Assembly (NCBI RefSeq): GCF_052425735.1
Contig: NC_135771.1
Coordinates: 8,308,001 to 8,372,000, forward strand
Origin: Oculina patagonica
Lineage: Eukaryota
DNA length: 64,000 nucleotides
Direction: 5' to 3'
The notes below the pieces were generated by a model, which was not told the DNA's origin, did not search any database, and saw nothing but the letters and a program-made list of their open reading frames with translations. Below, in pieces: positions 10,679-63,032 of this stretch. Position 1 is the stretch's first letter; each line of letters begins with the position of its first letter. Both the position numbers and the translations under genes were made by a program.

Positions 10679-12526
10679 TTATCCAAATGACGTTGATTAG
10701 GACGATGTACTGAATGAAAAAGGCGATGATGGGACCGCTGCAAATGAAAAACCTGAAGAGATCGTTCCAAATGAAGAAGCTTACGAGGTTGTTCCAAATG
10801 AAAGAGGCTTGACTTCTTCCTGGACAAGGCAAAGTTTATCCAGTACTCCTTTGGAGAGCTCTAGTACACAGCCACTGAATGTATCTTTACTTTTTTCAGA
10901 GATCGTTTTCACGGGTATGGTTGTCGCCTGGATCCACTTGTCCTCTGTGGGATCATAGCATTCAACACTCAATTCGCTTTCAATACCGTTCCTTGTGCCA
11001 CCCAGCACATAGAGCTTTTTGTTCAGACATACCATACTGCCATAGACGCGAACAACATTCAAGCTTCCAATAAACTGCCATTCATTTGTAGAAACATTGT
11101 ACATCTCACATGTTGCCGTTACCATTCTCAATTTGTTTGCGTCTCCGGCAACAAAAATCTTTAATTGGGTGGCCACACCAAAAGCACAGCCTCTTTCTTG
11201 TTGCATGTCAGTAATTTCCTCCCATTTGTTTTTAACAGTGTCGAATCGTTCCGCTTTCGTAACGTACTCCGACTCCTCTGGCGGCTTGCCACCAAGAACA
11301 TAAAGATAATTACCAGAGGCAACAACACAAGCCTCTTCTCTACAGCCCTCGTGAGATGACAAAACTGTCTGCCATGAACACAACTCCACATTGTACCTTT
11401 TAATCGTTGATGTGGCGTCTTCAATCTTGACTTCAATGGCATAGATTTCTCCTCTAACGACAGCCACCATGGCAAAATTTGTGGACAAGTCCAAAGTAGC
11501 CCAGCCATTGAAAACGGGATCATATCTCTCTGCCTTACCAATTTAAGGAAAAGTGTACAACTGATCGCAGAATTTTATCATCTGGGTTGTCTGATTTTTC
11601 TCTGACAGCCCGTCTGGCAAACGCTTCCACTCATCTTTCTCTGGGAGATAACAAAAAGTGTATTTCCCTCCACAAGCTACAATGACGCGTGTTTCAATCC
11701 CTTTTCTCGGTGACTGCAGCAGATCGTCGTCTTCACTTGCAAAGGTAGTCAGCTTGATAGCATCTGAGGTCAGCTTCAAACAAGCAAAATTCTCTTGCAC
11801 GAGTTCATTTGTCACGACATAGAGTAAATAGTCACGCGATAGGAAACCCAGCCGAACGTGACGAAATAATTCTTCAAAAAATGCTTTTCGCTCGCTTTTG
11901 TTTTGTTCAACCCACCTTAATATGATTTTAAAAACATCGGCTTCCACTGCAACACAAATCTCATCACTTGAAATCCACCTCTCAACTTCCTTCGCCTCCA
12001 AGTTTAAAAATTCATCCATTTCTGCTACAGAGGCGACGTTTGCGTGGATGAACTTCCTGCTGTTAGCGATAAGTTCGTCACACTGGTATTTCTCAGCAAA
12101 ATAAAAGGTTGAAATGCAGTTTAATTTGGACATCTGTCCTTCAAGAAATCGCCCAGAAATTGTTTTCAATCCCGGAATGAGCAGATAATTCGCTGCGGCT
12201 ATCAGGTCTGCAGCCTGATTCTCCTGAGTGATCTCGACACTTCCTGTGTAGATGAACTCCAAAACATCTTCCATAACAGACCCCGAAATCTCTTCGAACC
12301 GAGCAATTCCTTCTCGATTCTCTTTCATGTCGCTCTGAAGAAGCTTGTGAAAGAACGGGCTTGCTGCGGAGAGCACATTTCTGTGAGCCTTGAACTCTTT
12401 CTCATCTTTCGTCACCAAAGTTACGTCGCATAAATAATCTTGTTTTCGCTGCATGTTGAGCCGCTTTGTCAATTCCACACAAAAAGAAGCTTGTTCTGTA
12501 ACGGAGATAGGCTGTAGATCTTCCAT
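10679..12526 (-). pseudogene. K1: BTB-BACK-Kelch gene with FG-repeat tail, three in-frame stops
   Basis: A 616-codon frame colinear with K8. TAA occurs at 11543-45, 10781-83 and 10697-99 (K8 has CAA at the first and last). One Kelch GG is mutated to GD. The translatable part is a 327-aa BTB-BACK. Confidence 0.9.
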
Positions 12527-12780
12527 GCTCCAAAGAATAGCCGTATTTTCTGAAGATTTAGGTTCTAACCGTCTAGCGTCTTTATATTAGACGGAGAAAA
12601 AGAAGCGAAAGTTCGAGAAGGTATCTCATCACGAGGTCTCCTCGTGATGACGTCATCTCTGGATTAGTTCCCAGTGTCCTCTTCCTCTTCCGCTTTCGAT
12701 TTTGATGATATCTAAGAGGACTCGATAAGACGGTTAAAAAGGAGTCTTTATTTCAAGGTAATAAGGCTATTCTCTGGAGT
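12527..12780. promoter_or_regulatory. Bidirectional promoter/5' region of K1-K2
   Basis: 254 bp between divergent ATGs. Contains a perfect palindrome tcatcacgagg-tct-cctcgtgatga (12626-50), GATGACGTCATC (12646-57) and cttccgctttcgatttt (~12687-703). Confidence 0.7.
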
Positions 12781-14499
12781 ATGGAAGATTTGAAGCCTAT
12801 TTCTGCTGCCGAACAAGCTGCTTTCTGTGTGGAAATGACAAAGCGGCTCAACATGCAGCGAAAACAAGATCATTTATGCGATGTAACTTTGGTGACGAAA
12901 GATGACAAAGAGTTCAAGGCGCATAGAAATGTCCTTTCCGCAGCAAGCCCGTTCTTTCACAAGCTTCTTCAGAGCGACATGAAAGAGAATCGAGAAGGAA
13001 TTGCTCGGTTCGAAGAGATTTCGGGGTCAGTAATGGAAGATGTTTTGGAGTTCATCTACACAGGAAGTGTCGAGATAACTCAAGAGAATTCTGAATATCT
13101 AATCGCTACAGCGAACTATCTGATCATTCCGGGATTGAAAACCGTTTCTGGCCGATTTCTAGAGGGACAAATGACCAAATCAAACTGTATTTCAACCTTT
13201 TATTTCGCTGAGAAATACCAGTGTGACGAGCTTATCGCTAACAGCAGGAAGTTTATCCACGCGAACTTCGCCTCTGTAGCAGAAATGGATGAATTCTTAA
13301 ACTTGGAAGCGAAGGAAGTCGAGAGGTGGATTTCAAATGATGAGATTTCTGTTCCAGACGAGGCAGATGTTTTTAGAATCATATTGAAGTGGGTTGAACA
13401 AGACACGAGCAATCGAAAATCAGTTTTTGAAGAATTGTTTCGTCATGTGCAACTGGTTTTTCTATCGCGTGACTATTTGTTCGATGTCGTGACAAATGAA
13501 CTCGTGCGAGAGAATTCGGTTTGTTTAAAGCTGACCTTAGATGCAATGAAGCTGACTAGCTTTACAAGTGAAAACGAGTTTTCACAATCGCCGAGAAAAG
13601 GGATTGAAACACGCGCCATTGTAGCTTGTGGAGGGAAATACACTTTTTGTTATCTCCCAGAGAAAGATGAGTGGAAGCGTTTGCCAGACGGATTGTTAGA
13701 AAATCGAAGCTGTTATACCCAGATGATAAATTTCCGTGATCAGTTGTACACCTTTCACGGTTGCAAGGCAGAGAGATATGATCCTGTGTTTGATGTTTGG
13801 TCTACTTTGAAGTCAGCACCCAGGGGTGATAACGTGACTGTAGTTAGAGGCGAAATCTATGCTATTGAAGTGGACACGTACAGTAAGAAGAAATCCACTA
13901 TCGCAAGGTACGATGTTGAGCGTTGTTCGTGGCAGACAGTTCTGCAATCTCACGAGGGCTGCAGGCAAGACGCTTGTGTTGTTGCAGCTGGAAATCATCT
14001 GTATGTTCTCGGTGGAACGCCGCCTCAGACAAGGGAATGCGTTGCGAAAGCGGAGAGATTCGACACTGTGGAATACAAATGGGAAGAAATCGTAGACATG
14101 CAACAAGCAAGAGGCGGTGCTTTTGGTGTGGCCACTCAAGGAAAGATTTTTGTTGCCGGAGGAAGGGATAGAGAGAACTGTATGTCGCAAACTTGTGAGA
14201 TGTACAATATCTCATCAAACGAATGGCAGTTTATTGGAAGTTTGAATGTTAGTCGTGTGTGCGGCAGTATGGTGTGTCTGAAGGGAACACTCTATGTGCT
14301 GGGTGGCACAAGGGATAACTGGTCACGAAGTGATTTGAGTGTTGAATGCTATGACCCTACAGAGGACAAATGGATCAAGAAGACAACCATACCAGTGAAA
14401 ACGATCTCGGAAGAAAATAAAGATACATTCACCGGGTGTGCACTGAAACTCTCCAAAGGAGTACTGGACAAAGCTTACGTTGTTAAACTAAACGAATAG
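12781..14499 (+). CDS. K2: Kelch-like BTB-BACK-Kelch protein, 572 aa, intronless
   Basis: BTB signature LCDVTLV..FKAHRNVLSAASPFF..FIYTG, BACK (NCI..AEKY.C..L; WISNDEI), Kelch repeats (YVLGG, ERFD..KW, FVAGG, ECYDP..KW). Confidence 0.95.
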   Translation: MEDLKPISAAEQAAFCVEMTKRLNMQRKQDHLCDVTLVTKDDKEFKAHRNVLSAASPFFHKLLQSDMKENREGIARFEEISGSVMEDVLEFIYTGSVEITQENSEYLIATANYLIIPGLKTVSGRFLEGQMTKSNCISTFYFAEKYQCDELIANSRKFIHANFASVAEMDEFLNLEAKEVERWISNDEISVPDEADVFRIILKWVEQDTSNRKSVFEELFRHVQLVFLSRDYLFDVVTNELVRENSVCLKLTLDAMKLTSFTSENEFSQSPRKGIETRAIVACGGKYTFCYLPEKDEWKRLPDGLLENRSCYTQMINFRDQLYTFHGCKAERYDPVFDVWSTLKSAPRGDNVTVVRGEIYAIEVDTYSKKKSTIARYDVERCSWQTVLQSHEGCRQDACVVAAGNHLYVLGGTPPQTRECVAKAERFDTVEYKWEEIVDMQQARGGAFGVATQGKIFVAGGRDRENCMSQTCEMYNISSNEWQFIGSLNVSRVCGSMVCLKGTLYVLGGTRDNWSRSDLSVECYDPTEDKWIKKTTIPVKTISEENKDTFTGCALKLSKGVLDKAYVVKLNE

Positions 14500-22668: not shown

Positions 22669-24366
22669 ATGGAAGATCTGCAGCCTATCACTGCTGCCGA
22701 ACAAGCTTCATTCTGTGTGGAATTGACAAAGCGGCTCAACATGCAGCGAAAACAAGATCATTTATGCGACATAACTTTGGTGACGAAAGATGACAAAGAG
22801 TTCAAGGCTCATAGAAATGTGCTTTCCGCAGCAAGCCCGTTCTTTCACAAGCTTCTTCAGAGTGACATGAAAGAGAATCGTGAAGGAATCGCTCGGTTCG
22901 AAGAGATTTCGGGGTCTGTAATGGAAGATGTTTTGGAGTTCATTTACACAGGAAGTGTCGAGATAACTCAAGAGAATTCTGAAGATCTAATCGCTACAGC
23001 GAACTATCTGATCATTCCGGGCTTGAAAACCGTTTCTGGCCGATTTCTAGAAGGACAAATGACCAAATCAAACTGCATTTCAACCTTTTATTTCGCTGAG
23101 AAATACCAGTGTGACAAACTTATCGCTAACAGCAAGAAGTTCATCCACGCGAACTTCGCCTCTGTAGCAGAAATGGATGAATTCTTAAACTTGGAAGCAA
23201 AGGAAGTTGAGAGATGGATTTCAAGCGATGAGATTTCTGTTGCAGTCGAAGCCGATGTTTTGAAAATCATTTTCAAGTGGATCGAACAAAACAAAAGCGA
23301 GCGAAAGGCAACGTTTGAAGAATTGTTTCGTCACGTGCGGCTGGTTTTCCTGTCGCGTGACTATTTGCTCGATGTCGTGACAAATGAACTTGTGCGAGAG
23401 AATTTCGGTTGTTTGAAGCTGGTTTCAGATGCTATTAAGCTGACTAGCTTTACAAGTGAAAATGATCTTCGGCAGTCACCGAGAAAAGGGCTTGAAACAC
23501 GCGCCATTGTAGCTTGTGGAGGGAAATACACTTTCTGTTATCTCCCCGAGAAAGATGAGTGGAAGCGTTTGCCAGACGGGCTGTCAGAGAATCGGGACTA
23601 TGAAACCAAGATGATAAACTTCCACGATAAGTTGTACACCTTTCACCGTTATAAGGCAGAGAGATGCGATCCCGTATTTAATGGCTGGTCTACTTTGGAC
23701 TTAAGTTTGTCCGCCCCTTCTACTATGGTGACTGTCGTTAAAGGAGAAATCTATGCTGTTGAGGTCAACACATCAACGAATAAATCCACTATTCAAAGGT
23801 ACAATGTAGAGTTGTGTTCATGGCAGACAGTTCTCTCATCTCACGAGGGCTGCAGAGAAGAGGCTTGAGTTGTTGCAGCTGGTAATCACCTTTATATTCT
23901 CGGAGGCAAGCGGCCACAGGCAGGATACGTTACGAAAAGTGAGAGATTCGACACTGTGGAAAACAAATGGGAGGAAATCGCAGACATGCAAAAAGAAAAA
24001 AGCTACACTTTTGGTGTGGCCACTCAAGGAAACATTTTTGTTGCCGGTGGGTGGTCGAGAACATGTGAGATGTACAATATTTTAAAAAACGAATGGCACT
24101 CTATTGCAAGCTTGAATGTTAAGCATGTATGGGGTAGTATGGTGTGTCTGAAGGGAACACTCTATGCCCTGGGTGGTGTAAGGAATGTCACCTATTTCCC
24201 AAGTGAGTTAACTGTTGAATGCTACGACTCTACAAAGGACAAGTGGATCAAGAAAACAACCATACCAGTGAAAATGATTTCCAAAGAAAGTAATAATACA
24301 TTTACTGGCTGCGTACTGAAACTCTCCAAAGGAGTACTGGACAAACTTGACGTTGTTAAAGAATAG
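22669..24366 (+). pseudogene. K4: BTB-BACK-Kelch gene with a single in-frame TGA
   Basis: 566-codon frame with TGA at 23866-68 where most paralogs have TGT (Cys). The frame continues unbroken to the normal stop. CRE at 22542-49. Confidence 0.85.
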
Positions 24367-25045
24367 TCCCGCAGCTGTTTCGCACCGTTGTGTTTGAAAG
24401 GTCCACTTAACCTTAAACTTTACGTACATTTTACAGCAAAGTTTCATTTTAAGTTCATTATTTTCCGAGATTAGAAAACAGTAGAATGACCTCTAGAATG
24501 TATGAACACATTTACATAGTTTGAGTATGCTTTCTTAAATGTCAACTTACCGACAGATCGACCTTCAGCTTGAAGTTCTGAGTAGGAGCGTGACTTTTTT
24601 CATAATTAGTGCGCATGCCCAAGATCGTCACTTGTCACACAATTCTCGTTCCTAGAACCTCCGCGTCTACTGAAGGGCTCTGGTACGAGACTGGCGAACA
24701 GGCTCTTTGGTAGAGGATATGGGGCGAAGGGAAAGCGGGATCTATTTGAATATTGAATATTGAATGTCCCTAATAACTGAACCACGAAGACTTAGAAGTA
24801 AATAAGTGTTATAGTACAGTAACAAATCAAACAGTGATGAAAACTACGCGAGAAATTGAAAAATCGAGTTAGATGTTAGTAAAGTCACGCGAGGTGTAGA
24901 AAAGATTAACAAAATCGAGCGAGAAATTATAAACGTTTTAGCTTTCGCGGAGCCGTAGTGTTAGTTTTTCATGTGAGACAAACTTTCAAAGAAAGTTGTA
25001 AGCCAGAACGTTCAGAACGAGCAATCATTGCGCAATCATGTTATA

Positions 25046-39730: not shown

Positions 39731-39902
39731 CGAAATGATTTGAGTGTTGAATGCTATGACCCTACAGAGGACAAATGGATCAAGAAGACAACCGCATACC
39801 AGTGAAAATGATCTCCGAAAAAGGTGAGGATTCATTCACCGGGTTTGCACTGAAACTCTCCAAAGGAGTACTGGACAAAGCGTTGTTAAACTAAAAGAAT
39901 AG
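39731..39902 (+). pseudogene. K6: 3' relic of a Kelch-like gene
   Basis: Only RNDLSVECYDPTEDKW..KLSKGVLDK..KLKE* remains, with small frameshifting indels. The 3' flank matches that of K9. Confidence 0.9.
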
Positions 39903-41159
39903 TCACACAGCTGTTTGGCACCATTGTGTTTGAAAGGTCCACTTACCCTTAAACTCGGGGTAGGAGGGAGGGGAATCATCTGGATCTGGAAAATAATAAC
40001 AAATTGTAAAATTTAAAATAAAACGAAAAAATAAAAACGAAAAATAAAAACGAAAATAAAAAGGAAACCTGGTCGATGATCGGTCCCAAGGAAAACAGCT
40101 TTCCCTTATGCCTACAGGTTTGCTTAATAGAGTCTGTCTGTTAGCTTCAGTTTAGGGTTTGAAAGATGAAGCTGACAGTTGAAGATCTACTGTAAACGCT
40201 ACTACTTTGGTTTAACGATTTAAATACATTTTACAGCAAAGTTTCATTCCAAGTTTACCTTTTTCCGACATTAATTTACAGTCGAATGTTTGAATATATG
40301 AATATATTTAGGGCATCGTTTCGAGTATGTTTTACATCAATAAAATTCACTCAAAATCTTTTTCCTTTGATTTAGAGATGTTCAATTACCATACAATTTA
40401 CAAACACTATTATTTCGAAAGTGTCTACTTACCGACAGATCGATGATATTAAGTGACCTTCAACTCGAACTAGCAGTACGAGTATGAACAGTACGAGTAT
40501 GAGCGTGACTTTTTTAAACCTTGCGTGTGCCGTGCCCAAGATCGTCACGTGTCATACAATTCACGTTTCCAGAACCTCTGCGTCTCCTTGGCAGCGACAC
40601 TGGAGGATCAAAGGCTCTGGAAACGAGAATGGTTATTTGAATTACGATTTGAATAGTCCTTATAACTGAACCATGAAGTCTTCGAAGTAAATAAGTCTAC
40701 TCCACCAAGGCAAACAATGATCGTAGGTTTGCGTGACAAAGAGAGCAAAAAAGGGAGGGGGGGGAGGGGGGGGGGGGAGTATAAAAATCACGAGCGAAGT
40801 TATAAGAAAAGTCACGCAAGATGTTCTAAATGGCGTAAACATTTAATTCCCAAATCGTACGAGAAAAAAAAAAGTTTTAGCTTTCGTAAAGCCGCTATTT
40901 TACCCATTTATGTAAGAGAAACTTATAAGATTGGTCTTTAATGTTAGTATTGTGTTAAAATAAAGTGATTTCATCTGAAATCTTGTGAATAGTGCATGTA
41001 TTAAGTAGCCAATTAGAGCGAACAAGAAACACTAGTAACTTGATGAAGTCGAGACTTGGAAGGATTCTTCGGCTGGGAAGTGACAAACCTGACGGTTCCG
41101 TCTCTTTCGTCACAAAACCTGCTTAGCAAGGTAAAAAAATCAAGTCTGCATCGGATCAA

Positions 41160-47907: not shown

Positions 47908-50900
47908 TCCATGCTTAGTGACGTAACGCTTCTTTACCATGGTAACCAGGGCGGGATAAAGCTGGTGACAACCCTGCTTACACGTGTTTCTTGTTGGTTG
48001 ATAGAAATTCATTTACATCACTTATTCACTTTTTTCGTTGAAGGTTTTTATTTTAGCATGTAATACATCTTGGAAGACAAGTTATTTCTATAGAACGGAG
48101 AAACGGATGAATGCTTTGCACGTGAACAATCTTTGAGAATTACTTCACGTTAAAAGATCATTTTCCTATAATGTATTTACAAGTCATAATCAGTCACATG
48201 CAAGTTCATAAACTTAATAAATAAACCATTATCCGCTAAATTCCGGGTTCTTATGTTCTAATATCTTATGTTTAAATGGACTAGGACAGTAAATTTTGAC
48301 AACTATTACTAATCTTCTTAAAGGAGCTACGAAGAGGGTGGTGAATTCTTAAAATACGGGGTTTAGAGAGTTGCAGTTATTTTCCAAGAGACTGGATCAG
48401 CAGTCTGTTTATATCCTCCAGCTGTTCAGACACATTTTGCTTCAAAGGTCGATAGTCACTCTTCATGCTTTTGGAAGCAATAACTGAGTACAGTTAAGGA
48501 GCTTTATGCATAACTGCAAGGTACACTTCATGAAGTTATTGAATATGCGAGTCTTCAATTATCATACACTTTCCCTGAAAATACTGCTGAAATAGCGTTC
48601 ACTTGAATGGGCGTCATACACCAGGGTTTCATAAACAAACAAGTTAGAACCAGCTTGTACAGCATATTAAAAAAAACCCTTACTGATTAAAATATAAACA
48701 TCATTAAAATACATTGTAGCCATGATATATTGCAATTCCTGAGTTTTAATTGGTTTACAGGCGGTGTTATATGAACTCATATTCCATAAACCACAGATGT
48801 GAAAGGGGTGCGCGTTAGTAATTATTCCACTCGCGCTTGTTGGCATTCTCGTCCCCAGAGATGGAAATGCAGGATGATATTACAATATGTGTTGTTTGAA
48901 CAGCTGGCTCTCTGTTGATGGATCTCTAAAACTAGAAACTTTCTATAACCGGTACATTGTATTCTAACTCAACTTAAACTATCATAAATGAATGTCTCCA
49001 GCGTCTTTAATGCGCTATTATTGTCTGGCGCATCCCCCGCATAATGGGGGACCAAAATGGAGTAAATTTGAAGTGAAAGCCCCGCTTTTGCCCCGCTCAT
49101 GCCCGAGGGGAGGGGGGGGGGGAGGGGTCGGGGGTTATTTGGGAAAATCGTGGAAGTAAAATCCCAGCTAGCTAAGCTAGAGCTGACCACTTCTCTTATA
49201 GCGGAAAGGTGAGTTTTGTGTAAAATGTTCAACGTGGATCAGTGACAAAGCAGTCGGCAAGCGTCCGACGGAATCACGCAAAGTGTCTAATGTTTCATCC
49301 CAAGTAAAACTTGCCCTGTGAATTTTCTAATGTGTGTAGCAACTCACATAATGTTTTTTCAGGAAGATTATCTGATTTGTTTGTCTTCTCATTGGAACCA
49401 CATGCATGGAGCTTATACTGCGAGAGATTTGAAATTTCCTTTCCGCGATTTTGTTGAGACAGGTCGACTTGGAAAGTACGAATTCAAAATAAACTTCTTT
49501 AATCATTCCCCATTACTTTAACAAATGTCTGTCCGTATAATGTGTAATGCCTCAGACGTTGAAAATAAAGCATAACCTATCTCAGACTAGAGTCCACTTC
49601 CTCTTTGGTGGAAGCGTTTTCCGCTAACTCAAACCGATTTGAACGGATCGGACAAACCCCATGGACTAAACTTTGTCCATGCGTCGAAAATGGACGTTGT
49701 CCAATTAACTCCATTCGTCGAGGGCCCTGCTGAATTCGGGGGAAGGGGGTGGTATAAATCCCATTTCGCAGCCTATTGTTTTCCCAAATGTTCAAAATCC
49801 CAGTTCCAGTTCGATTATTTTTCGTTCTGTGATTCCCATTTCCAGCGACTAAGTCCCAGTCCCAGTACCTATTTTGCCTAAATCCCAGTTCTCATTTTAC
49901 TCGGCCTTCAGGACGCTTCATGTTCAACCGACCTAACTTGTGCTCTGAAAATTTTTTGTCAACTTTTACAAGAGAGTTACACTGAGCGAGGAAGGAGTTT
50001 AACAAGCAAAAGAGGCAACACAGGGTAAAAAGCCCAATGGATTTACTTGGAAACTTCTTTATTGTGGAATGAACTCACAGTCCTCAAACGCCTACTACAT
50101 CGGACGCGTTTAACTGTGAAATAAAGAAATATCACTAAAATACTGTTCAGTAATAAGTTGAAACGACATGACATAAATTTTATCTACTACAGCTATTATC
50201 ATGAGTTATCTATTATTATTTTATCACTTTAGTATATCGCTTTAGAATATTTTAGGTCGTAAAATTTCGCTACCGAAAATGTTTGCACGATCGTTCAAGC
50301 TCAGAATCCCTGATACACTTTACAAGTCTGCTACTAGTGCTACGAATGGTGAAATTACCGTAGTTTACACCATATTACAACAAAAAGAGAATGAAAAAGC
50401 TCGTTAACGAATGAACGTCACCAACAAACTATCTGATTTTTACTTACACTATAATAAGCAATTAAATTTATATCTGCAAACGTCCACAACTTAATATAGT
50501 GTTGTCTTCGGCGTAAACTTCAAATCACTCACATTTTGCGAGCTTGCAAGCGATAAGTTCGATCCTTCTTTTGACAAAATAAATATACAAGAATTGAAAA
50601 TCCTTTACGCATAAACAAAACTAAACAGATCTAGGAAAAGAGTCTTGCACGTTTTATTGATTATGCTGTCAAACCGCGATTTTATCGCTTGGTCTTGTTT
50701 TATCTCCACCCAGCACGGCGGGAAATAGTTTTCTTATAGATTATATCGTTTGACATGGTCAAGAGCACAAAATTTGAAAGGGTTCAGAGTCAACTTTTAC
50801 CTGTCCGCCATTTCGGACCTCTAAGAGGGTTTTGGTTTAACCTCTTCCCACCCCTCCCACCGCCCCTACAATGACTACATTTAACATATGTCCCGAGAGG

Positions 50901-51229
50901 GGTACAGTTCTATAACTGCAGTGTAACCCGCGTGGAATTCGCTGAGATGACGAGCAGTTTAAATGGAATGCACAACCTTTCTTCGTTTCTATAGTGGTCT
51001 CTACAGATCTGGAAACAAGTTAGTTTTGTCCCCTCAGATCTAAAGTTTGAGGGAGCATCGAGATTGTTTGTGGCTTAATGCGATTCTAGGGAAAACAAAA
51101 CTAACTTTTACACCCAGGACGGCTTATTCAGCCTCGAATCTTAACTGAAGACCTAAATTTACACAGGTTTCTCAAAATATCACAATCCAACTGGTTTAAG
51201 AATAAGTGGCCAAATATTGGCTGTACAGG

Positions 51230-53080
51230 TTATCCAAATGACGTTGATTGGGACGCTGTACTAAATGAAAAAGGTGACGATGGGGGCGCTCCAAATGAAA
51301 AACCTGATGAAGCCACTCCAAATGTAATAGGCGTTAACGGGGTCGCTTTAACTGCAATAGGCGATACTACTTCCTGGACAAGGCAAAGTCTGTCCAGTAC
51401 TCCTTTGGAGAGCTTCAGTACACAGCCACTGAATGAATCTTTACTTTCTTTGGAGATCGTTTTCACTGGTATGGTTGTCGCCTGGATCCACTTGTCCTCT
51501 GTAGGGTCATAGCATTCAACACTCAATTCGCTTTGGGTACAGTTTCTTGTGCCACCCAGCACAAAGAGCTTTTTGTTCAGACACACCATACTACCATAGA
51601 CGCGAATAACATTTAAGCTTCCAATAAACTGCCATTCGTTTGTAGAAACATTGTACATCTCACATGTTGTCGTTACCTTTCTCAATTTGTTTCCACCTCC
51701 AGCAACAAAAATCTTTCCTTGAGTGGCCACACCAAAAGCACCGCCTCTCTCTTGTTGCATGTCAGTAATTTCTTCCCATTTGTTTTCCACAGTGTCGAAT
51801 CTTTCCGCTTTCGCAACATACTCCGATTCCTGCGACGGCTTGCCACCGAGAACATACAAATAATTACCAGCCGCAACAACACAAGAGTCTTGCCTGCAGC
51901 CCTCCTGAGATAACAGAACTGTTTGCCATGAACACAGCTCCACATTGTACCTTTTGATGGTGGATTTTTTCGTTGATGTATCGACTTCAATAGCATAGAT
52001 TTCTCCTTTAACGACGGACACCACAGCAGAATTTGTGGGCAAGTCCAAAGTAGACCAACCATTGAAAACGGGATCGTATCTCTCTGCCTTACCAGTTTGA
52101 GGGAAGGTGTGCAACTGATCACGGAATTTTATCATCTGGGTTTTCTGATTTTTCTCTGACAGCCCGTCTGGCAAACGCTTCCACTCATCTTTCTCTGGGA
52201 AATAACAAAAAGTGTATTTGCCACCACAAGCTACAACGACGTGTGTTTCAAGCCCTTTTCTCGGTGACTGCGGCAGATCATTATCTTCACTTGCAAAGGT
52301 ATTCAGCTTTATAGCATCTAAGGCCAGCTTTAAACAAGCAAAATTCTCTTGCACGATTTCATTTGTCACGACATAGAGTAAATAGTCACGCGATAAGAAA
52401 CCAAGCCGAACGTGACGAAATAATTCTTCCAAAAATGCTTTTCGCTCGCTTTTGTTTTGTTCAACCCACCTTAATATGATTTTAAAAACATCGGCTTCGA
52501 CTGCAACAGAAATCTCATCACTTGAAATCCACCTCTCAACTTCCTTCGCTTCCAAGTTTAAGAATTCATCCATTTCTGCTACAGAGGCGATGTTCGCGTG
52601 GATGAACTTCCTGCTGTTAGCGATAAGTTCGTCACACTGGTATTTCTCAGCGAAATAAAAGGTTGAAATGCAGTTTAATTTGGTCATCTGTCCTTCAAGA
52701 AATCGCCCAGAAACTGTTTTCAATCCCGGAATGAGCAGATAATTCGCCGTGGCTATCAGGTCTGCAGCCTGATTCTCCTGAGTGATCTCGACACTTCCTG
52801 TGTAGATGAACTCCAAAACATCTTCCATTACAGACCCCGAAATCTCTTCGAACCGAGCAATTCCTTCTCGATTCTCTTTCATGTCGCTCTGAAGAAGCTT
52901 GTGAAAGAACGGGCTTGCTGCGGAAAGCACATTTCTATGAGCCTTGAACTCTTTCTCATCTTTCGTCACCAAAGTTACGTCGCATAAATGATCTTGTTTT
53001 CGCTGCATGTTGAGCCGCTTTGTCAATTCCACACAAAAAGAAGCTTGTTCTGTAACGAAGATAGGCTGTAGATCTTCCAT
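51230..53080 (-). CDS. K8: Kelch-like BTB-BACK-Kelch protein with FG-repeat C-terminal tail, 616 aa
   Basis: Intact ORF ending ..ITFGVASSGFSFGAPPSSPFSFSTASQSTSFG. Confidence 0.95.
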   Translation of the reverse strand: MEDLQPIFVTEQASFCVELTKRLNMQRKQDHLCDVTLVTKDEKEFKAHRNVLSAASPFFHKLLQSDMKENREGIARFEEISGSVMEDVLEFIYTGSVEITQENQAADLIATANYLLIPGLKTVSGRFLEGQMTKLNCISTFYFAEKYQCDELIANSRKFIHANIASVAEMDEFLNLEAKEVERWISSDEISVAVEADVFKIILRWVEQNKSERKAFLEELFRHVRLGFLSRDYLLYVVTNEIVQENFACLKLALDAIKLNTFASEDNDLPQSPRKGLETHVVVACGGKYTFCYFPEKDEWKRLPDGLSEKNQKTQMIKFRDQLHTFPQTGKAERYDPVFNGWSTLDLPTNSAVVSVVKGEIYAIEVDTSTKKSTIKRYNVELCSWQTVLLSQEGCRQDSCVVAAGNYLYVLGGKPSQESEYVAKAERFDTVENKWEEITDMQQERGGAFGVATQGKIFVAGGGNKLRKVTTTCEMYNVSTNEWQFIGSLNVIRVYGSMVCLNKKLFVLGGTRNCTQSELSVECYDPTEDKWIQATTIPVKTISKESKDSFSGCVLKLSKGVLDRLCLVQEVVSPIAVKATPLTPITFGVASSGFSFGAPPSSPFSFSTASQSTSFG

Positions 53081-53335
53081 GCTCCAAAGAATAGCCGTAT
53101 TTTCTGAAAATTTAGGTTCTAACCGTCTAGCGTCTTTATATTAGACGGAGAAAAAGAAGCGAAAGTTCGAGAAGAGAAGGTATCTCATCAGGAGGTCTCC
53201 TCGTGATGACGTCATCTCTGGATTAGTTCCCAGTGTCCTCTTCTTCTTCCGCTTTCGATTTTGATGATATCTAAGCGAGACGGTTCAAAAGGAGTCTTTA
53301 TTTTAAGGTAATAAGGCTATTCGATTCTCTGGAGT
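53081..53335. promoter_or_regulatory. Bidirectional promoter/5' region of K8-K9
   Basis: Near-identical to 12527-12780. TGACGTCA at 53207-14; the palindrome has one mismatch. Confidence 0.7.
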
Positions 53336-55051
53336 ATGGAAGATTTGAAGCCTATTTCTGCTGCCGAACAAGCTGCTTTCTGTGTGGAAATGACAAAGCG
53401 ACTCAACATGCAGCGAAAACAAGATCATTTATGCGACGTAACTTTGGTGACGAAAGATGACAAAGAGTTCAAGGCTCACAGAAATGTGCTTTCCGCAGCA
53501 AGCCCGTTCTTTCACAAGCTTCTTCAGAGCGACATGAAAGAGAATCGAGAAGGAATAGTGCGGTTCGAAGAGATTTCGGGGTCTGTAATGGAAGATGTTT
53601 TGCAGTTCATCTACACAGGAAGTGTCGAGATCACTCAGGAGAACTCTAAAGATCTAATTGCTACAGGGAACTATCTTCTTCTACCGGGCTTGAAAACAGT
53701 TTCCGGACGATTTCTAGAAGGACAGATGACCAAATCAAACTGCATTTCAACCTTTTATTTCGCTGAGAAATACCAGTGTGACGAACTCATCGCTAACAGT
53801 AGGAAGTTCATCCACGCGAACTTCGCCTCTGTTGCAGAAATGGATGAATTCTTAAACTTGGAAGCGAAGGAAGTTGAGAGGTGGATTTCAAGCGACGAGA
53901 TTTCAGTTCCAGACGAAATAGATGTTTTTAGAATCATATTAACATGGATTGAACAAGACAAGAGCAATCGGAAAGCAGCTTTTGAAGAATTGTTTCGTCA
54001 CGTGCAACTGGTTTTTCTATCGCGTGACTATTTGATAGATGTCGTGACAAATGAATTCGTGCGAGAGAATTCGGATTGTTTAAAGCTGGCCTTAGATGCT
54101 ATAAAGCTGACTAGCTTTACAAGTGAAAATGATCGTCCGCAGACACCGAGAAAAGGGCTTGAAACACATGTCATTGTAGCTTGTGGAGGGAAATACACTT
54201 TTTGTTATCTCCCGGAGAAAGATGAGTGGAAGCGTTTGGCAAACGGGTTGTCAGAGGATATTTTCTTTAAGACTTCGATGATAAACTTTCGCGATCAAAT
54301 GTACACCTTTCACTATGACAAGGCAGAGAGATACGATCCCGTTTTTGATGGTTGGTCTACTTTGAATTTAGTGCCCAGGGGTTCTGCCATGGTGACTGTA
54401 GTTAGAGGAGAAATTCATGTTATTGAGGTGAACACATCAACGAAAAAATCCACTATTCAAAGATACAATGTTGAGCGGTGTTCATGGCAGACAGTTCAGT
54501 CATCTCACGAGGGCTGCAGGGTAGAGAGTTGTGTTGTTGCTTCTGGTAATCATGTGTATGTTCTTGGTGGTAAGCCGCCACAGGAATCTGAGGACGTTGT
54601 GAAAGCAGAGAGATTCGACACTGTGGAAAACAAATGGGAGGAAATCGCAGACATGCAAGAAGCGAGAGCCAGGGCTTTTGGTGTGGCAACTGATGGAACG
54701 ATTTTTGTTGCCGGAGGAAGACACGGATGGGGAACTACATTGAAAACATGTGAAATGTACAATGTTTCTACAAACGAGTGGCAGTTGATTGCAAGCTTGA
54801 ATGTTAACCGTGAATGGGGCAGTATGGTGTGTGTGAAGGGAACCCTCTATGTGCTTGGTGGCACAAGGGACTATTCACGAAATGATTTGAGTGTTGAATG
54901 CTATGACCCTACAGAGGACAAATGGATCAAGAGGACAACCATACCAGTGAAAACGATCTCCGAAAAAAATGAGGATACATTCACCGGGTGTGCACTGAAA
55001 CTGTCCAAAGGGGTACTGGACAAAGCTCGCGTTGTTAAACTAAAAGAATAG
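53336..55051 (+). CDS. K9: Kelch-like BTB-BACK-Kelch protein, 571 aa
   Basis: Intact ORF. The N-terminus MEDLKP..VEMTK is shared with K2. Confidence 0.95.
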   Translation: MEDLKPISAAEQAAFCVEMTKRLNMQRKQDHLCDVTLVTKDDKEFKAHRNVLSAASPFFHKLLQSDMKENREGIVRFEEISGSVMEDVLQFIYTGSVEITQENSKDLIATGNYLLLPGLKTVSGRFLEGQMTKSNCISTFYFAEKYQCDELIANSRKFIHANFASVAEMDEFLNLEAKEVERWISSDEISVPDEIDVFRIILTWIEQDKSNRKAAFEELFRHVQLVFLSRDYLIDVVTNEFVRENSDCLKLALDAIKLTSFTSENDRPQTPRKGLETHVIVACGGKYTFCYLPEKDEWKRLANGLSEDIFFKTSMINFRDQMYTFHYDKAERYDPVFDGWSTLNLVPRGSAMVTVVRGEIHVIEVNTSTKKSTIQRYNVERCSWQTVQSSHEGCRVESCVVASGNHVYVLGGKPPQESEDVVKAERFDTVENKWEEIADMQEARARAFGVATDGTIFVAGGRHGWGTTLKTCEMYNVSTNEWQLIASLNVNREWGSMVCVKGTLYVLGGTRDYSRNDLSVECYDPTEDKWIKRTTIPVKTISEKNEDTFTGCALKLSKGVLDKARVVKLKE

Positions 55052-55204
55052 TCCCTCAACTGTTTTGCACTGTTGTGTTTGAAAGCTCCACTTACCCTTA
55101 AACTCGGGGTGGGAGGGAGGGGAATCACCTGGATCTGGAAAAAATAATAGCAGATTGTGAGGAAAACGAAACCTGATCGATCCCAAGGGAAACAGTTATC
55201 CCTT

Positions 55205-57295: not shown

Positions 57296-58669
57296 TTCCA
57301 TGCTTGTCCCTGGGACAAATTTCCTCCTCCTCCCCCCGGTGGGGGACTACCATGTAAAAGTGACGAAGGTTTTCGTCGGAAATTTTGAAAGGACCCCCTA
57401 AAAGGTACAAACAAGAGAGGATATCCTCTCTTGGTACAAAAACTTGCTTGGTGGGTGTATCTTAAATTCATTTTCATCTCTAAAAGTTATCAATATGAAA
57501 CCGCCGGAAGTCGTGTTCCTTTTTCTTCATAAATGCCATAGAAAGAAAGCACCGTGATATTCCAAAAATAAGACCTGCACTTGTATTTGCACATAAATGT
57601 ACTTTTAAGGTGGGCTTATATTTGGGAGGGGCTAAAACACAGGAGAGAGGAGGCCGGGGGGGGGGGGGGGGGGTGGTGGTGGTGGTATTTTCGGAGGGAA
57701 ATTTGCGTTTTAAAAATCTTTGGGTTTCTATTTGGACGGGAAACTGTCTGAAAAATTTTTTGGTGCATTTAAGAATACCACATGGCCAAAATCTCTAAAA
57801 AAAAACTATGCAAAACCCATAACGGACTTGAAACAAACATTACAAGTCTCTGAACAACGAAAGATATAAAAGAAGCTCGAGCTCTACAATAGTTGGGACC
57901 TATAGTCAGAAGAGTTATATGTCAGATGTTTCGTTATAAAAGAGATATTACTAATTATAAGCCCATGAGCTTAGCATATTTCCCTAATTTTGCCGTACCA
58001 AAAAAAAAAAGAAAAAGAAAATAAAACACTGAGAAATAAAACAATAGATCCACTCGTGATGACGTCAACGTTAAATTCGTTCCCAGTGTTCTCTCCCTTG
58101 GCCTCTTCCGCTTTCGATTTGGACATCTGAGCGAGACGGTTTAAAAGCAGTCTATATTTCACGGTATTAAGGTTATTCTCTGGAGTATGGAAGATCTGCA
58201 ACCTATCTCTGCTGCCGAGCAAGTGTCATTCTGTGTGGAATTGACAAAGCGGCTCAACATGCAGCGAAAACAAGATCATTTATAAAGCTGAGTAGCTGTA
58301 CGAGTGATAATGATGACCTGCCGCAGTCGCCGAGAAAAGGGCTTGAAACACATGTCATTGTAGCTTGTGGAGGGAAATACACTTTCTGTTATCTCCCAGA
58401 GAAAGATGAGTGGAAGCGTTTGGCAGACGGGTTGTCAGAGAATCGAAACTACCAAACCAAGATGATAAACTTCCACGATAAGTTGTACACCTTTCACCGT
58501 GGTAAGGCAGAAAGATACGATCCCGTATTTAATGGCTGGTCTACTTTGGACTTAAGTTTGCCCACCTCTTCTGCTATGGTAACTGTCGTCAAAGGAGTAA
58601 TCTATGCTATTGAAGTCGACACACGCACCCAAAAATCTACTATTCTAAGATACAATGTTGAACAGTGTT

Positions 58670-60676
58670 CAGTTATCAGATTTGATAACCTCGTGACGTC
58701 ACAACATGGCGCCATTTCGTAACTCGGGGAGATTTCGGAGGATATCTCGTTTGTTCGTCTATTTTTCGGTTGTGTTCGTGTGTTCTACCCATAGTTCTAC
58801 GCGATGACCTTGAGAGAAAGATGAACTTCAAAAGTGCATAAAATGGCGAGCATCGGTGGTGAGTTGTGCGGGTATTTGTTTGACGATTTGAAGAGATCGC
58901 TCGAGGATGACAGTTCATTCCAGATATGTTTATATTCTTTGCCGTCAATTTTAAGTCAGTTGCGCATTTTTGTGGAACACGTAGAAAAAATGCTGTGTTC
59001 TTCAGTTATCCTTCTTTCGATTTATCGCTTGCTCATCCGAGGGCACAAAGAATTGTACGAGGGCACTATGGTTTTGTGATTTGCTCTCTGATTCCTCTAC
59101 TGTCCGCCATGTTTAATTGTTTGTGTTTCTAGTGTACGTTCTATAGAATGAGTAGACTTAAGTGGCTAAATAATGGATTTTCGCATAAAGAAAATCGTTC
59201 GTTTGTTTCTTTACTGCTTATGTTTGGAGGGCTTAGTGCTACCGTCCGTAGTCCTTTTGTGGTTGACAGTGAAATCAGCGAAGTATGAGCAACACTATCG
59301 CGGCACGCAGTCTCGAAGTCTTTGAATTTATGAGTGCTTAGAGTATGGCCGCTGTATGCGCATTGGAATTTTAGCGGGCTTTATTTTGTTTGTTAAACAC
59401 GCTTTCAGTTCGCCCTAATCCTTCGCGCAACCCGCTTACAGAGCGAGTAATACACATTTATCTGTTTATTCGACTAAACCATCGCGCAACACGCTTTCAG
59501 AACGACTACTACACATCTACTTTCCAATCTTGGACATATCCTTCGAACAATATGAATGTTGTTATGTAATATCATGAACTGCGTTACTGCGGTAGACGGT
59601 ATATTTATCTCTTTCATTTTGCATACAGATCTAGAAAATCGTTCGTTTGTTTCTTTACTGCTTATGTTTAGAGGGCGAAGTGGTACCGGCTACAGTCGTT
59701 TAGTGGTAGACAGTGAAATTAGCGAAGTATTATGAGCAATTGTTATCGCGGCACGTAGTCACAAAGTCTTTGAATTTGTAATGAGCGGGCTTTATTTTGT
59801 TTGTTATACACGCTTTCAGAACGAGTAATACACATCTGTTCAACATATTTCCTTCATGCAATCCGCTTACAGAACGAGTAACAGATCTGTTCAACTTATT
59901 CTTCGCGCAACACGCTTTCATAGCGAGTAGAATACACATCTACTTTTCAATCTTCAACATATCGGCTCCGAACAATTGTTATGTAAATTCGAAGCGCGTG
60001 ACTGCGGTAGACGGTATATTTTTTCTCTTTCTTCTTGTCACGCTTATTAACCCAAATATTTCTTTATTCAACAGATCATCAAAGCAACTGACCGCCGAAG
60101 GCACTGCGACGAAGAAGTTCTGAGTATGAACTCAATAAACAACGCATCTTTTATTTCTCTACCTTTGTATCGGTTTCGTTCTTGTCTTAGTTAATAAATA
60201 TTAGCAGCGTTGGTGATGAAATTGCTTCAAATAAAGGCATTCACGGTTATATTGGTGTACCAGTACACTTGCACAAATTCAAAAGTCTCAACAAATTTGG
60301 AGAAATACTATTTTACAAGCAAGGGGAATACAATAAAAGCTAATAAACTCCGGATGTCCGGAAAGCTAAGATCTAAGACCGCGCGCGTTCGATGACCTAA
60401 TCTAAATATGCTTTGTCTGTTATTTTCGACAAGAATTTAAACGTAAATGCATGCGGCCAAATGGACATTCAAATCTAGACTTTTTTATCTTTAATTTAGT
60501 GCACAATTTGAATCGCATTTAACTGAGAGCCGTATAAACAAGCTTTCTTGAAATGGCCGCCATATTAAAATGAGAACTGTTGCCATGATAACATGTCACA
60601 TGAGCTCAAACTTGGGGGTTGATTGGCTAATGGTTTGTTTTGGCCGTGATTATCAAATCTGATAACTGTGCCGGGC
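58670..60676. mobile_element. 2-kb non-autonomous element inside K10
   Basis: 19-bp perfect IR cagttatcagatttgataa (58670-88 / 60650-68), 8 extra bp at the right end, tgtt repeated on both flanks, and an internal ~440-bp duplication. Confidence 0.8.
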
Positions 60677-61007
60677 TGTTCATGGCAGACAGTTTTCTCA
60701 TCTCATGAGGGCTGCAGGGAGCAGTCTTGTGTTGTTGCAGCTGGTAATCATCTGTATGTTCTCGGTGGGAGGCCGCCACAGACACGGGAATACATTGCGA
60801 AAAATGAGAGATTTGATACTGTGGAAAACAAATGGGAAGAAATCGCAGACATGCAACAAGCAAGAGGCTGTGCTTTTGGTGTGGCCACTCAAGGAAAGAT
60901 TTATGTTGCAGGGGGGAGACAGAGTGTGGGAGGGTGGGCGTCATGGTTGACAGCATGTGAGATGTACAATATTTCAACAAACGAATGACAGTCTATTGCA
61001 AGCTTAA

Positions 61008-61577
61008 CCCTTAACATGCTTAGCGCGGATTATTCCGGGATTTGGAGGAATGGCCATTCTGCCACTTATGACGTCACCAATTTACACGTCAGCAGATTTT
61101 TGTGATTTGCATCTTATAGAGCTGGGATAGATCTTTCCACAGGACTGTCCATCTTCAATATTGACTGAATTCCGACAGAGCTAATCGAAAAAAACGCGAT
61201 CAGTTTTTGGTGTAAAATTGGTGCTAAAACAGGCCAAAATACCCGTACTTGATCATGATCTCCTTTCCAGGGTTTTCCATTGATTCAGATCAAAACTTTT
61301 CAGGCCAGTAGAAGGGGTGCACAGAGTAAAAGATAGAGAGAATAAGAAAGCAGAGAAAAACGAAAAGGAAAGGAGCAAAGAAAAAATCGGAACGGTTCAG
61401 CAAAAAAAAAAAAAAAAAAAATTGTACATTTTTACATGGAAATTTCATCAAAATCTTCCTGCATTGTCAGAAAGTGCATTTTTAGCAAATTTAGAGAACT
61501 TTTGGACCGTAGAGCCAAGAAAATCGATAAACGGTTAAAGAAACGCGTTTTTAGGAATAATTTCAGCATATTAAAGG
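61008..61577. mobile_element. piggyBac-type MITE inside K10
   Basis: TTAA duplicated; ends cccttaacatgct / agcatattaaagg. Confidence 0.85.
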
Positions 61578-63032
61578 TTAAATGTGTGTCGTGCGTGGGC
61601 CAGTATGGTGTGTCTGAAGGGTACACTCTATGTGCTGGGTGGCACAAATAACAGTTCACCAAGTGAATTGATTCTTGAATGCTGTGACCCTACAGAGGAC
61701 AAGTGGATCCAGAAGACAACCATACCAGTGAAAACGATCTCCGAAGAAAGTAAAGATACATTCACCGGGTGTGCACTGAAACTCTCCAAAGGAGTGCTGG
61801 ACAAAGCTCACATTGTTAAACTAAAAGAATAGTCCCGCAGCTGTTTGGAACGGTTATATTTGATCACTTCGATCTGAAAAATAATTGCAGATTGTGAGGA
61901 AAATAGGAAAACGAGAGCAGACTGGGAAGAGACGGAAGAGGAAATGAATCCAGTCGTTCATAACTTGACCTGTTGGCTTGCGTTTTTGTGTTTTCCACAC
62001 AATAATTGTTTAACACTTTACATTTGATGCTTGGTCTCAAGGAAACGGTTGTCGTCTATGCAGAGTCTGTTTATTAGCTTCAGTTTAGCGCTTGACTGAT
62101 GAAGCTGACAGTTGAAGATCTGTAAACGCTACTTCGTTGGTTTAACGATTTTCATACATTTTACAGCAAAGATTCCTTTCAAGTTTACCATTTTTCGACA
62201 TAAATTTACAGTAGAATGAATGAACATATTTACCGCGTCGTTTCGAGTATGTTTTACATCATTCAAATTCACTCAAAATGATTTAAGAGATGTTAAATAA
62301 TTTCCCATAAAATTGACAAACACTATTATTTCGAAAGTGTCTACTCACCGACAGATTGGTCAAGTGACCTTCAGCTCGAAGTAGCAGTAGGACTATTGTA
62401 TGAGCGTGATTCTTTTTAAACCTAGCGCGCGTGCCCAACATCATCACGTGTCACACTTTTCTCGTTCCCAGAACCTCCGGGTCTACTTGTCAGCGGCAGG
62501 GAGGGTCAAGGGCTCTGGAAACGAGACTGGTTTTTAAATAGCGATTTATCTCCCCTAATTACATAACCACGAACATATAGAAGTGAATAACTGTTACAGT
62601 ACACTGCCAAACCAAACAACGATTGTATGCTTGCGTGAGAAAAAAATAGCAAAAAATCGAGGCTATAAAAATCACGCAAGAAGTTAGAAAATTAAGTTAG
62701 AAGCTAAAATGTCACGTAAGATGTTAAAAATTGCACGAGAAGTTAACAAAAATCGTGTGAGAAGTTATAAAGTTCTAATATGTATAGCGGAGCTGTAGTG
62801 TTTGTTTTTCATGTAAGACAAACTTACAACAAAAGTTGTAAGCCAGAACTTTCATGGCGAACAGTTGGTAGCTGCGAATTTTCGCCATTGTATTATTTTT
62901 GTTGTTGGATTGTTAGGTATAGTTTAGCTTAGTCATATTTAAGCTTATCAAGATTCTTAACTGAAAGAAACACCATGTTAAAATAAAGTAATTGGATTTG
63001 AAACCAAGCGAATCGTCCAGGAAATTCATATA

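Follow-up and report, generated by a model that had tools for sequence, protein, structure and literature searches.

What does a substrate adaptor of ubiquitin ligases gain, if anything, from ending in a peptide that resembles the phenylalanine-glycine (FG) repeats of the nuclear pore, and how does such an end arise? The question is raised by K8, a minus-strand gene of the stony coral Oculina patagonica (chromosome CM126648.1, assembly GCA_052425735.1), where its exact product of 616 amino acids (aa) is on record and its paralogues carry the name 'kelch-like protein 24 [Oculina patagonica]'. K8 lies in a stretch of 64 kb, called the window below, in which intronless BTB-BACK-Kelch ('KLHL24-like') genes form a tandem array, and it reads past the stop codon of its family into a short FG-containing tail. 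FG repeats are treated as a hallmark of nuclear-pore proteins. Comparison with relatives places FG tails in two clades of this family, with a Phe pair as the sole invariant part of the aligned clade-A tails, and we tentatively regard the K8 tail as a nucleoporin-like binding peptide. The family-level finding is interesting, and the single tail of K8 is a modest example of it.

The FG tail of K8

The gene, its tail and the related copy K1 occupy the following positions of the window, all on the minus strand:

51230-53080, minus: K8, an intact intronless BTB-BACK-Kelch gene of 616 aa, stop codon TAA at 51230-51232 (from the list of open reading frames, ORFs)
52694-53014, minus: BTB domain, aa 23-129 (Pfam PF00651, E = 1e-27)
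52367-52672, minus: BACK domain, aa 137-238 (Pfam PF07707, E = 1.2e-25)
51407-52249, minus: Kelch beta-propeller, aa ~278-558 (Pfam Kelch_1, E = 3.7e-32; Kelch_6, E = 7.7e-24)
51367-51373, minus: junction GAA-G-TAG, with codon E570, an extra G (51370) and an out-of-frame relic TAG (51367-51369)
51233-51370, minus: tail, aa 571-616, 46 codons beyond the family stop, reading VVSPIAVKATPLTPITFGVASSGFSFGAPPSSPFSFSTASQSTSFG
51317-51328, minus: tail motif ITFG
51290-51301, minus: tail motif FSFG
51260-51271, minus: tail motif FSFS
51233-51244, minus: tail motif TSFG
50653-51229, minus: probable 3' untranslated region (UTR), collinear in K8, K1 and the orthologous locus L001
10679-12526, minus: K1, a pseudogene copy of K8 with a homologous tail, terminal TAA at 10679-10681

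With an N-terminal BTB/POZ domain, a BACK domain after it and a C-terminal Kelch propeller, K8 has every sequence-defined feature of the KLHL adaptors of CUL3 and by these features is one of them. We assume CUL3 binding and BTB dimerisation from the domain family alone. Its relatives in the PDB are KEAP1, KLHL11, KLHL3 and KLHL22, whose Kelch domains match at 1e-24 to 1e-32, and in an AF2 model built with a 55-sequence alignment the propeller forms beta-strand blocks with a predicted local distance difference test score (pLDDT) of 80-93. K8 shares with other KLHL adaptors the standard succession of BTB, BACK and six-blade Kelch propeller; unlike them, it is intronless, belongs to a large coral-specific tandem array and ends in an FG tail. 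The preliminary description of this DNA knew of no KLHL protein with such a tail, and our literature searches likewise found none described in the papers covered, nor anything relevant on coral KLHL expansions.

The eight plus-strand copies terminate in ...KGVLDK..VVK(LK)E*, and K8 reads on, for 46 codons, which bears out the earlier estimate of about 45 aa and the motifs ITFG, FSFG, FSFS and TSFG reported with it. Its nearly uncharged, S/T/P/A-rich character is equally evident: a single Lys is the only charged residue of the tail, and the 53 residues past the KGVLD anchor contain six Phe and three FG, with 5.7% charged residues and 58.5% S/T/P/A/G. Three FG stand against 0.46 expected, about sixfold (p = 0.004, composition-matched shuffles). 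The tail DNA is common to K8 and K1 only within the window, and so is the exact word TCATTTGGA, whose five occurrences in the 64 kb all fall within these two tails at spacings of 27, 30 or 57 bp, in agreement with the repeats of about 27-30 bp noticed earlier. Tandem Repeats Finder gave nothing at a score of at least 30 on the K8 tail and called a 27-bp array in K1 only (score 82); the repeat period of K8 is therefore taken from the word positions and not from that program. In the AF2 model, aa 571-616 are coil at pLDDT 24-31, without secondary structure, and the tail is predicted to be intrinsically disordered.

K1 had been described as a second example of the tail, with one more unit. It is not an intact one: an in-frame TAA lies in its Kelch domain (11543-11545) and two more lie in its tail (10781-10783 and 10697-10699), all three at positions where relatives have CAA, so that the tail is not expressed as such. 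Its core is 92.5% identical to that of K8 without gaps, and by its sequence K1 is a recent pseudogene.

Origin and distribution of the tails

At the family stop, non-tail copies read GAA TAG TCCC, against GAA G TAG TA in K8 and GAA G TAG TCCC in its clade-mate P0004; one inserted G therefore took the TAG out of frame. The homology of K8 and K1 with the plus-strand copies extends to this old stop codon. Past the eight junction bases, local alignments with the non-tail 3' UTR did not score significantly above shuffled sequence (p = 0.10-0.62), and only the fixed-position match at the junction, not the free local alignments, was counted as evidence for the origin. As we read these alignments, the tail was opened by a 1-nt insertion at the family TAG and then grew in place as an in-frame minisatellite of 27-30 bp. 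Units 1 and 2 are closer to each other within a gene than to their counterparts in the other gene. When K8 is compared with its orthologue at L001 (GCA_044670265.1), identity is 98.1% in the core and 94.5% in the 3' flank but only 75% in the tail, a divergence of about 25% in the tail versus 2-5% in the flanks, and L001 combines a K1-type tail with a K8-type core. Repeat turnover or conversion, not point mutation, is the apparent source of this divergence.

A whole-protein search with K8 returned 1386 relatives, and the C-termini of the 120 listed were examined; a search of 5.8 billion proteins with the K8 tail region matched only the orthologue fragment P0001, and the remaining tails came from the whole-protein search. 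Among the 120 relatives listed, 13 exceed the KGVLD anchor by more than 16 residues, and all extensions of at least 30 aa carry FG motifs and fall in two clades of trees made from the core only, with the tail columns left out. Clade A (Shimodaira-Hasegawa-like approximate likelihood-ratio test, SH-aLRT, 97) comprises K8, K1 and P0001-P0007 from several assemblies, and the tail or its remains are present in nine of nine members. Clade B (SH-aLRT 98) comprises P0028, P0107, P0068, P0091 and P0101, all five with FG tails of 53-181 aa. A grouping of A and B as a single clade with a single tail origin was not rejected (approximately unbiased, AU, test, p = 0.33). The longest tail, that of P0028 (181 aa), holds 12 FG motifs, seven of them of the GLFG type, is encoded by a 63-bp x 6.6 array and falls just below the cut-off of the Pfam family Nucleoporin_FG (E = 2e-6, 28.9 bits, cut-off 32.2).

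Searching relatives for FG-tailed KLHL proteins and for conservation of their Phe residues had been proposed in the preliminary description, and it has given two FG-tailed clades and an invariant Phe pair. The persistence of Phe had earlier been read from K8 and K1; this comparison is weak evidence because the 3' flank is 95% identical and the tail only 77%, but the persistence itself holds across six clade-A members: in their aligned tails, nothing is invariant except the Phe pair of a central G/T-F-x-F-G/A. Relatives of K8 read TSAFNFGS and GFNFG, and K8 and its L001 orthologue have three FG motifs each, placed in different units. Repeat units measure 27-30 bp and 63 bp, with one of about 36 bp deduced from a 12-aa protein repeat, and there is an FG in every unit; FG exceeds shuffles in most tails. 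Synonymous divergence (dS) of the core is 0.21-0.50 in clade A, reaches 0.86 in clade B and goes up to about 1.2 from one clade to the other. Without selection for the motif, it is difficult to account for FG units of differing length and sequence being kept across such distances, and this persistence is our main argument that FG tails would matter in the family.

The members of the cluster show many tail length variants. One clade-B subclade retains P[VI][FY]ELSDDDD as its final residues, also in members with a short FG linker (P0125, P0127, P0130), and the hydrophobic core, Ser and acidic run of this end presumably resemble a phospho-regulated SUMO-interaction motif. A further end is found on the next minus-strand copy after K8, a member of clade A outside the window:

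L004:5679-5920 (P0091): P[VI][FY]ELSDDDD end, with cluster members P0101, P0068 and P0122-P0143
L008:3001-4743 = CM126648.1 8380475-8382217, minus: XP_078353480.1 (P0007, 'kelch-like protein 24'), about 8.5 kb past the right end of the window

XP_078353480.1 ends in ...VEEDDMGFGLFD (...EEDDMGFGLFD). Its last nine residues, DDMGFGLFD, are the conserved C-terminus of the ribosomal stalk P proteins, with an end-to-end alignment to PDB entries of P2 chains. An insertion of about 30 nt appears to have supplied GFGLFD and the stop, and decayed remains of an FG tail can be made out in a different frame of its 3' UTR, so that at this position one host-like motif has taken the place of another. XP_078353480.1 shows that the C-terminus of clade A collects short, apparently host-like motifs. 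The stalk peptide SDDDMGFGLFD is thus matched by XP_078353480.1 where K8 carries its FG tail; it differs from the case of K8 in motif and gene and lies outside the window. In JGI metagenome contigs, no Kelch end with the P-stalk motif behind it was found (0 matches). The C-terminal peptide of the stalk P proteins is the docking site of ribosome-inactivating toxins (PMC3280276, PMC2632931). Translation GTPases also dock on it.

Readings of the tail

The reading that we favour, at a confidence that remains tentative, is that the K8 tail acts as a nucleoporin-like binding peptide. An extra G before the family stop in the ancestor of the clade opened the frame into former 3' DNA, and the read-through stretch grew and still turns over as an in-frame minisatellite of 27-30 bp whose unit encodes x-F-x-F-G. 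If translated as we infer, the product would be a nearly uncharged tail of 46 residues, disordered in vivo as predicted, with three FG and one FS motif on a CUL3-type substrate adaptor. A BTB dimer would present two such tails and six FG motifs in total, which could suffice for weak avidity; the Phe side chains might bind importin-beta-type receptors or NTF2-like domains weakly and at several points, or partition into an FG phase. The ligase would thereby be concentrated at pores or FG condensates, or FG-binding proteins would be brought to the ligase.

The likeness to FG nucleoporins proposed in the preliminary description is borne out by composition, predicted disorder and the FG tails of the family. 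With these nucleoporins (GLFG, Nup98; FxFG, Nup153 and Nup62; PF13634), K8 has in common its FG motifs, low-charge S/T/G/P/A spacers, predicted disorder and conserved Phe among free spacers; unlike them, its tail is of local origin, has 46 aa and three FG, lacks a Pfam match and sits on a protein without a pore-anchoring domain. No domain for anchoring to the pore scaffold was found in K8, for which Pfam gave only BTB, BACK and Kelch families. K8 is not a nucleoporin, because it lacks an anchoring domain and stays below the Nucleoporin_FG cut-off, but it may work like an FG repeat. A closer parallel is importin-7, whose disordered C-terminal tail of about 30 residues, with GGxxF and a Ser/Thr-flanked FxFG, attaches, in the manner of nucleoporins, to the outer HEAT repeats of importin-beta, with its Phe residues inserted between the repeats (10.1101/2025.08.04.668392). 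This NlB region is, like the end of K8, a short disordered C-terminal FxFG tail on a non-nucleoporin; it differs in that its carrier is a karyopherin and its motif strongly conserved, whereas K8 is a ligase adaptor with a fast-turnover tail and putative binding.

Several observations weigh against a binding role for K8 itself. Its tail has no match in Pfam, Nucleoporin_FG (PF13634) included; three FG and one FS in 46 aa are a minimal number of motifs, and motifs in one tandem array are not independent observations. The ratio of nonsynonymous to synonymous change (omega) is about 1.2 against both K1 and L001, a value that does not point to purifying selection, and divergence is higher in the tail than in its non-coding flanks. 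The first motif is gone in K8, which has IAVKA where relatives have SFG, and the stop TAA is CAA in P0003, which continues with PVQPIFG, a sequence that the K8 frame still shows directly behind its stop; the tail is therefore shrinking in the K8 lineage, and the L001 orthologue stops 15 nt earlier than K8. The K8 tail appears to be the short, eroding end of the family range. Other frames of tail DNA have only 8 and 24 stops per 449 codons, and the open tail frame is weak evidence because these frames, too, are poor in stops; as a sign of selection it was rejected, since it is also circular. We likewise rejected positive selection as a reading of the omega: repeat turnover or conversion, not point mutation, drives the divergence of the tail, whose dS is inflated seven-fold over the core. 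The tail could thus be a neutral by-product in which a stop-loss frameshift exposed stop-poor, low-complexity 3' DNA, so that it is translated, serves no selected function and decays, and the omega, the excess divergence over the flanks, the lost motif and the nearly stop-free other frames all favour this. So do the stops that shift progressively inward in K8, L001 and K1, the discarding or replacement of the tail in P0006 and P0007, and the +1 frame of the non-tail 3' UTR, which already reads VVPQLFGTVVFE, so that FG comes free. However, neutrality has to accommodate FG tails that persist in two clades over the core distances given above with repeat units that differ yet all hold FG, a Phe pair that is the only invariant part, an FG number that is equal in K8 and its orthologue despite 25% divergence, and the lack of any long FG-free tail among the 120 relatives listed. 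We take the neutral account seriously and consider it somewhat unlikely.

Two further accounts concern whether the tail is protein at all and where its DNA came from. It would be very surprising if the tail belonged to a 3' UTR, an intron or an antisense gene. One antisense (plus-strand) frame is stop-free in K8, L001 and P0028, but this openness recurs in unrelated tails and therefore follows from composition; no start-codon-initiated plus-strand ORF of at least 30 aa lies over 51233-51370, and nearby plus-strand ORFs are short and outside the tail. The tail moreover extends the K8 ORF without a break, and for the sister gene the RefSeq model is exactly as long as the simple ORF (580 aa). The first minus-strand AATAAA past the K8 stop is at 50653-50658, and none lies between the start codon and 50658; because of this, and because the coding regions of the family are intronless, the tail is expected in the mRNA if K8 is expressed. 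That exon shuffling or retroposition brought the tail in from a nucleoporin gene deserves hardly any credence. The nucleoporin-like composition and the nearness of the P0028 tail to the Pfam cut-off would suit it, but homology with non-tail paralogues continues across the old stop codon without interruption, the tails are arrays of local tandem repeats, and a search of 5.8 billion proteins with the P0028 tail gave only that tail itself and one fungal nucleoporin (E = 2e-5). The word 'grafted', used of the tail in the preliminary description, does not suit a 1-nt insertion before the family's own TAG and local minisatellite growth, with no nucleoporin donor found in that search. The last account concerns use: the tail might mimic pore FG repeats so that FG-docking pathogen proteins, capsids or effectors, are caught by the ligase as on an integrated bait, which we judge unlikely. 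TRIM5-CypA is a ligase that catches pathogen proteins through such an integrated host-motif bait. An engineered fusion of an FG domain to E3 effector domains, Trim-NUP153C, restricts HIV-1 via its FG motifs (PMC3795039). Both join an E3 module to a host peptide that viral capsids bind, as K8 would; they differ in being of the RING/TRIM class rather than CUL3 adaptors, Trim-NUP153C is engineered, and the viral target of K8 is hypothetical. The setting of K8 in a fast birth-and-death tandem array with pseudogenes and the rapid turnover of its tail speak for a bait, and the exchange of the FG tail for a ribosomal stalk P-protein end in XP_078353480.1 lends it some weight. On the other side, any pathogen partner is purely hypothetical, rapid turnover fits neutrality equally, and mimicry of host motifs fits the recruitment of host partners equally. 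More improbable again is the extended form of this idea, in which coral KLHL24-like arrays are innate-immunity-like CUL3 adaptors whose C-terminal mimics of host docking peptides (FG, P-stalk, SIM-like acidic) trap and ubiquitylate viral capsids, ribosome-inactivating toxins or effectors, the K8 tail being one such bait.

A C-terminal Gly degron was considered as a separate candidate. Gly degrons (KLHDC2, KLHDC3, KLHDC10) have a conserved C-terminal Gly in a -GG, -RG, -KG, -QG, -WG, -PG or -AG context. K8 ends in -FG and its relatives in -SS, -HP, -KF, -HR or -PR, and this lack of a conserved end residue led us to reject the candidate.

The array around K8 and the meaning of its tails

Beyond K8 and K1, the window holds the following elements of the array:

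12781, 18590, 36702, 44023 and 53336, plus: starts of the intact plus-strand genes, which with K8 on the minus strand make six intact array genes
22669-24360, plus: full-length copy with a stop after codon 399, with K1 (10679-12526, minus) one of two full-length copies with nonsense codons
39731-39882: one of two array fragments, a 150-bp C-terminal piece of an array copy
58187-61829: the other fragment, a remnant of array copies, rearranged, in several frames
53081-53335, strand not assigned: head-to-head spacer of 255 bp between K8 and the plus-strand paralogue 53336-55051 (ORF coordinates)
24362-24405, 39895-39940 and 55049-55095: conserved post-stop stretch TAGTCCCRCAGCTGTTTGGCACCGTTGTGTTTGAAAGGTCCACTT, also in L005 and L008 (minus strand)
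51156-51163, minus: TGTAAATT in the 3' UTR of K8

K1 and the 22669 copy are full-length and inactivated by nonsense codons alone, without frameshifts, and such nonsense-only pseudogenes suggest recent inactivation in a birth-and-death array. Both tail-bearing minus-strand genes pair head to head with a plus-strand non-tail paralogue, K1 with the gene starting at 12781 over 12527-12780, and P0002, P0004 and P0007 are paired likewise at other loci; the head-to-head pair looks like a conserved bidirectional promoter unit. In non-tail paralogues, the first ~45 nt past the stop are alike across paralogues and assemblies, which is unusual for a 3' UTR and may reflect a regulatory element. The element TGTAAATT is retained in K1, L001 and L006 and nearly so in L005, and we take it to resemble a Pumilio response element.

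For the family, the locus displays steps by which new coding sequence and short-motif modules arise, namely a 1-nt stop loss, in-frame minisatellite growth and the swapping of motifs between paralogues. If the binding-peptide reading of K8 is true, FG-tailed ligase adaptors, whose motifs number three in K8 and as many as 12 in a relative, would link ubiquitylation in a new way to FG condensates or the transport machinery; or else they would be a natural counterpart of the engineered E3-FG restriction factors. Together, the FG, P-stalk-like and acidic tails of these coral genes provide a comparative series in which the roles of such tails can be tested.

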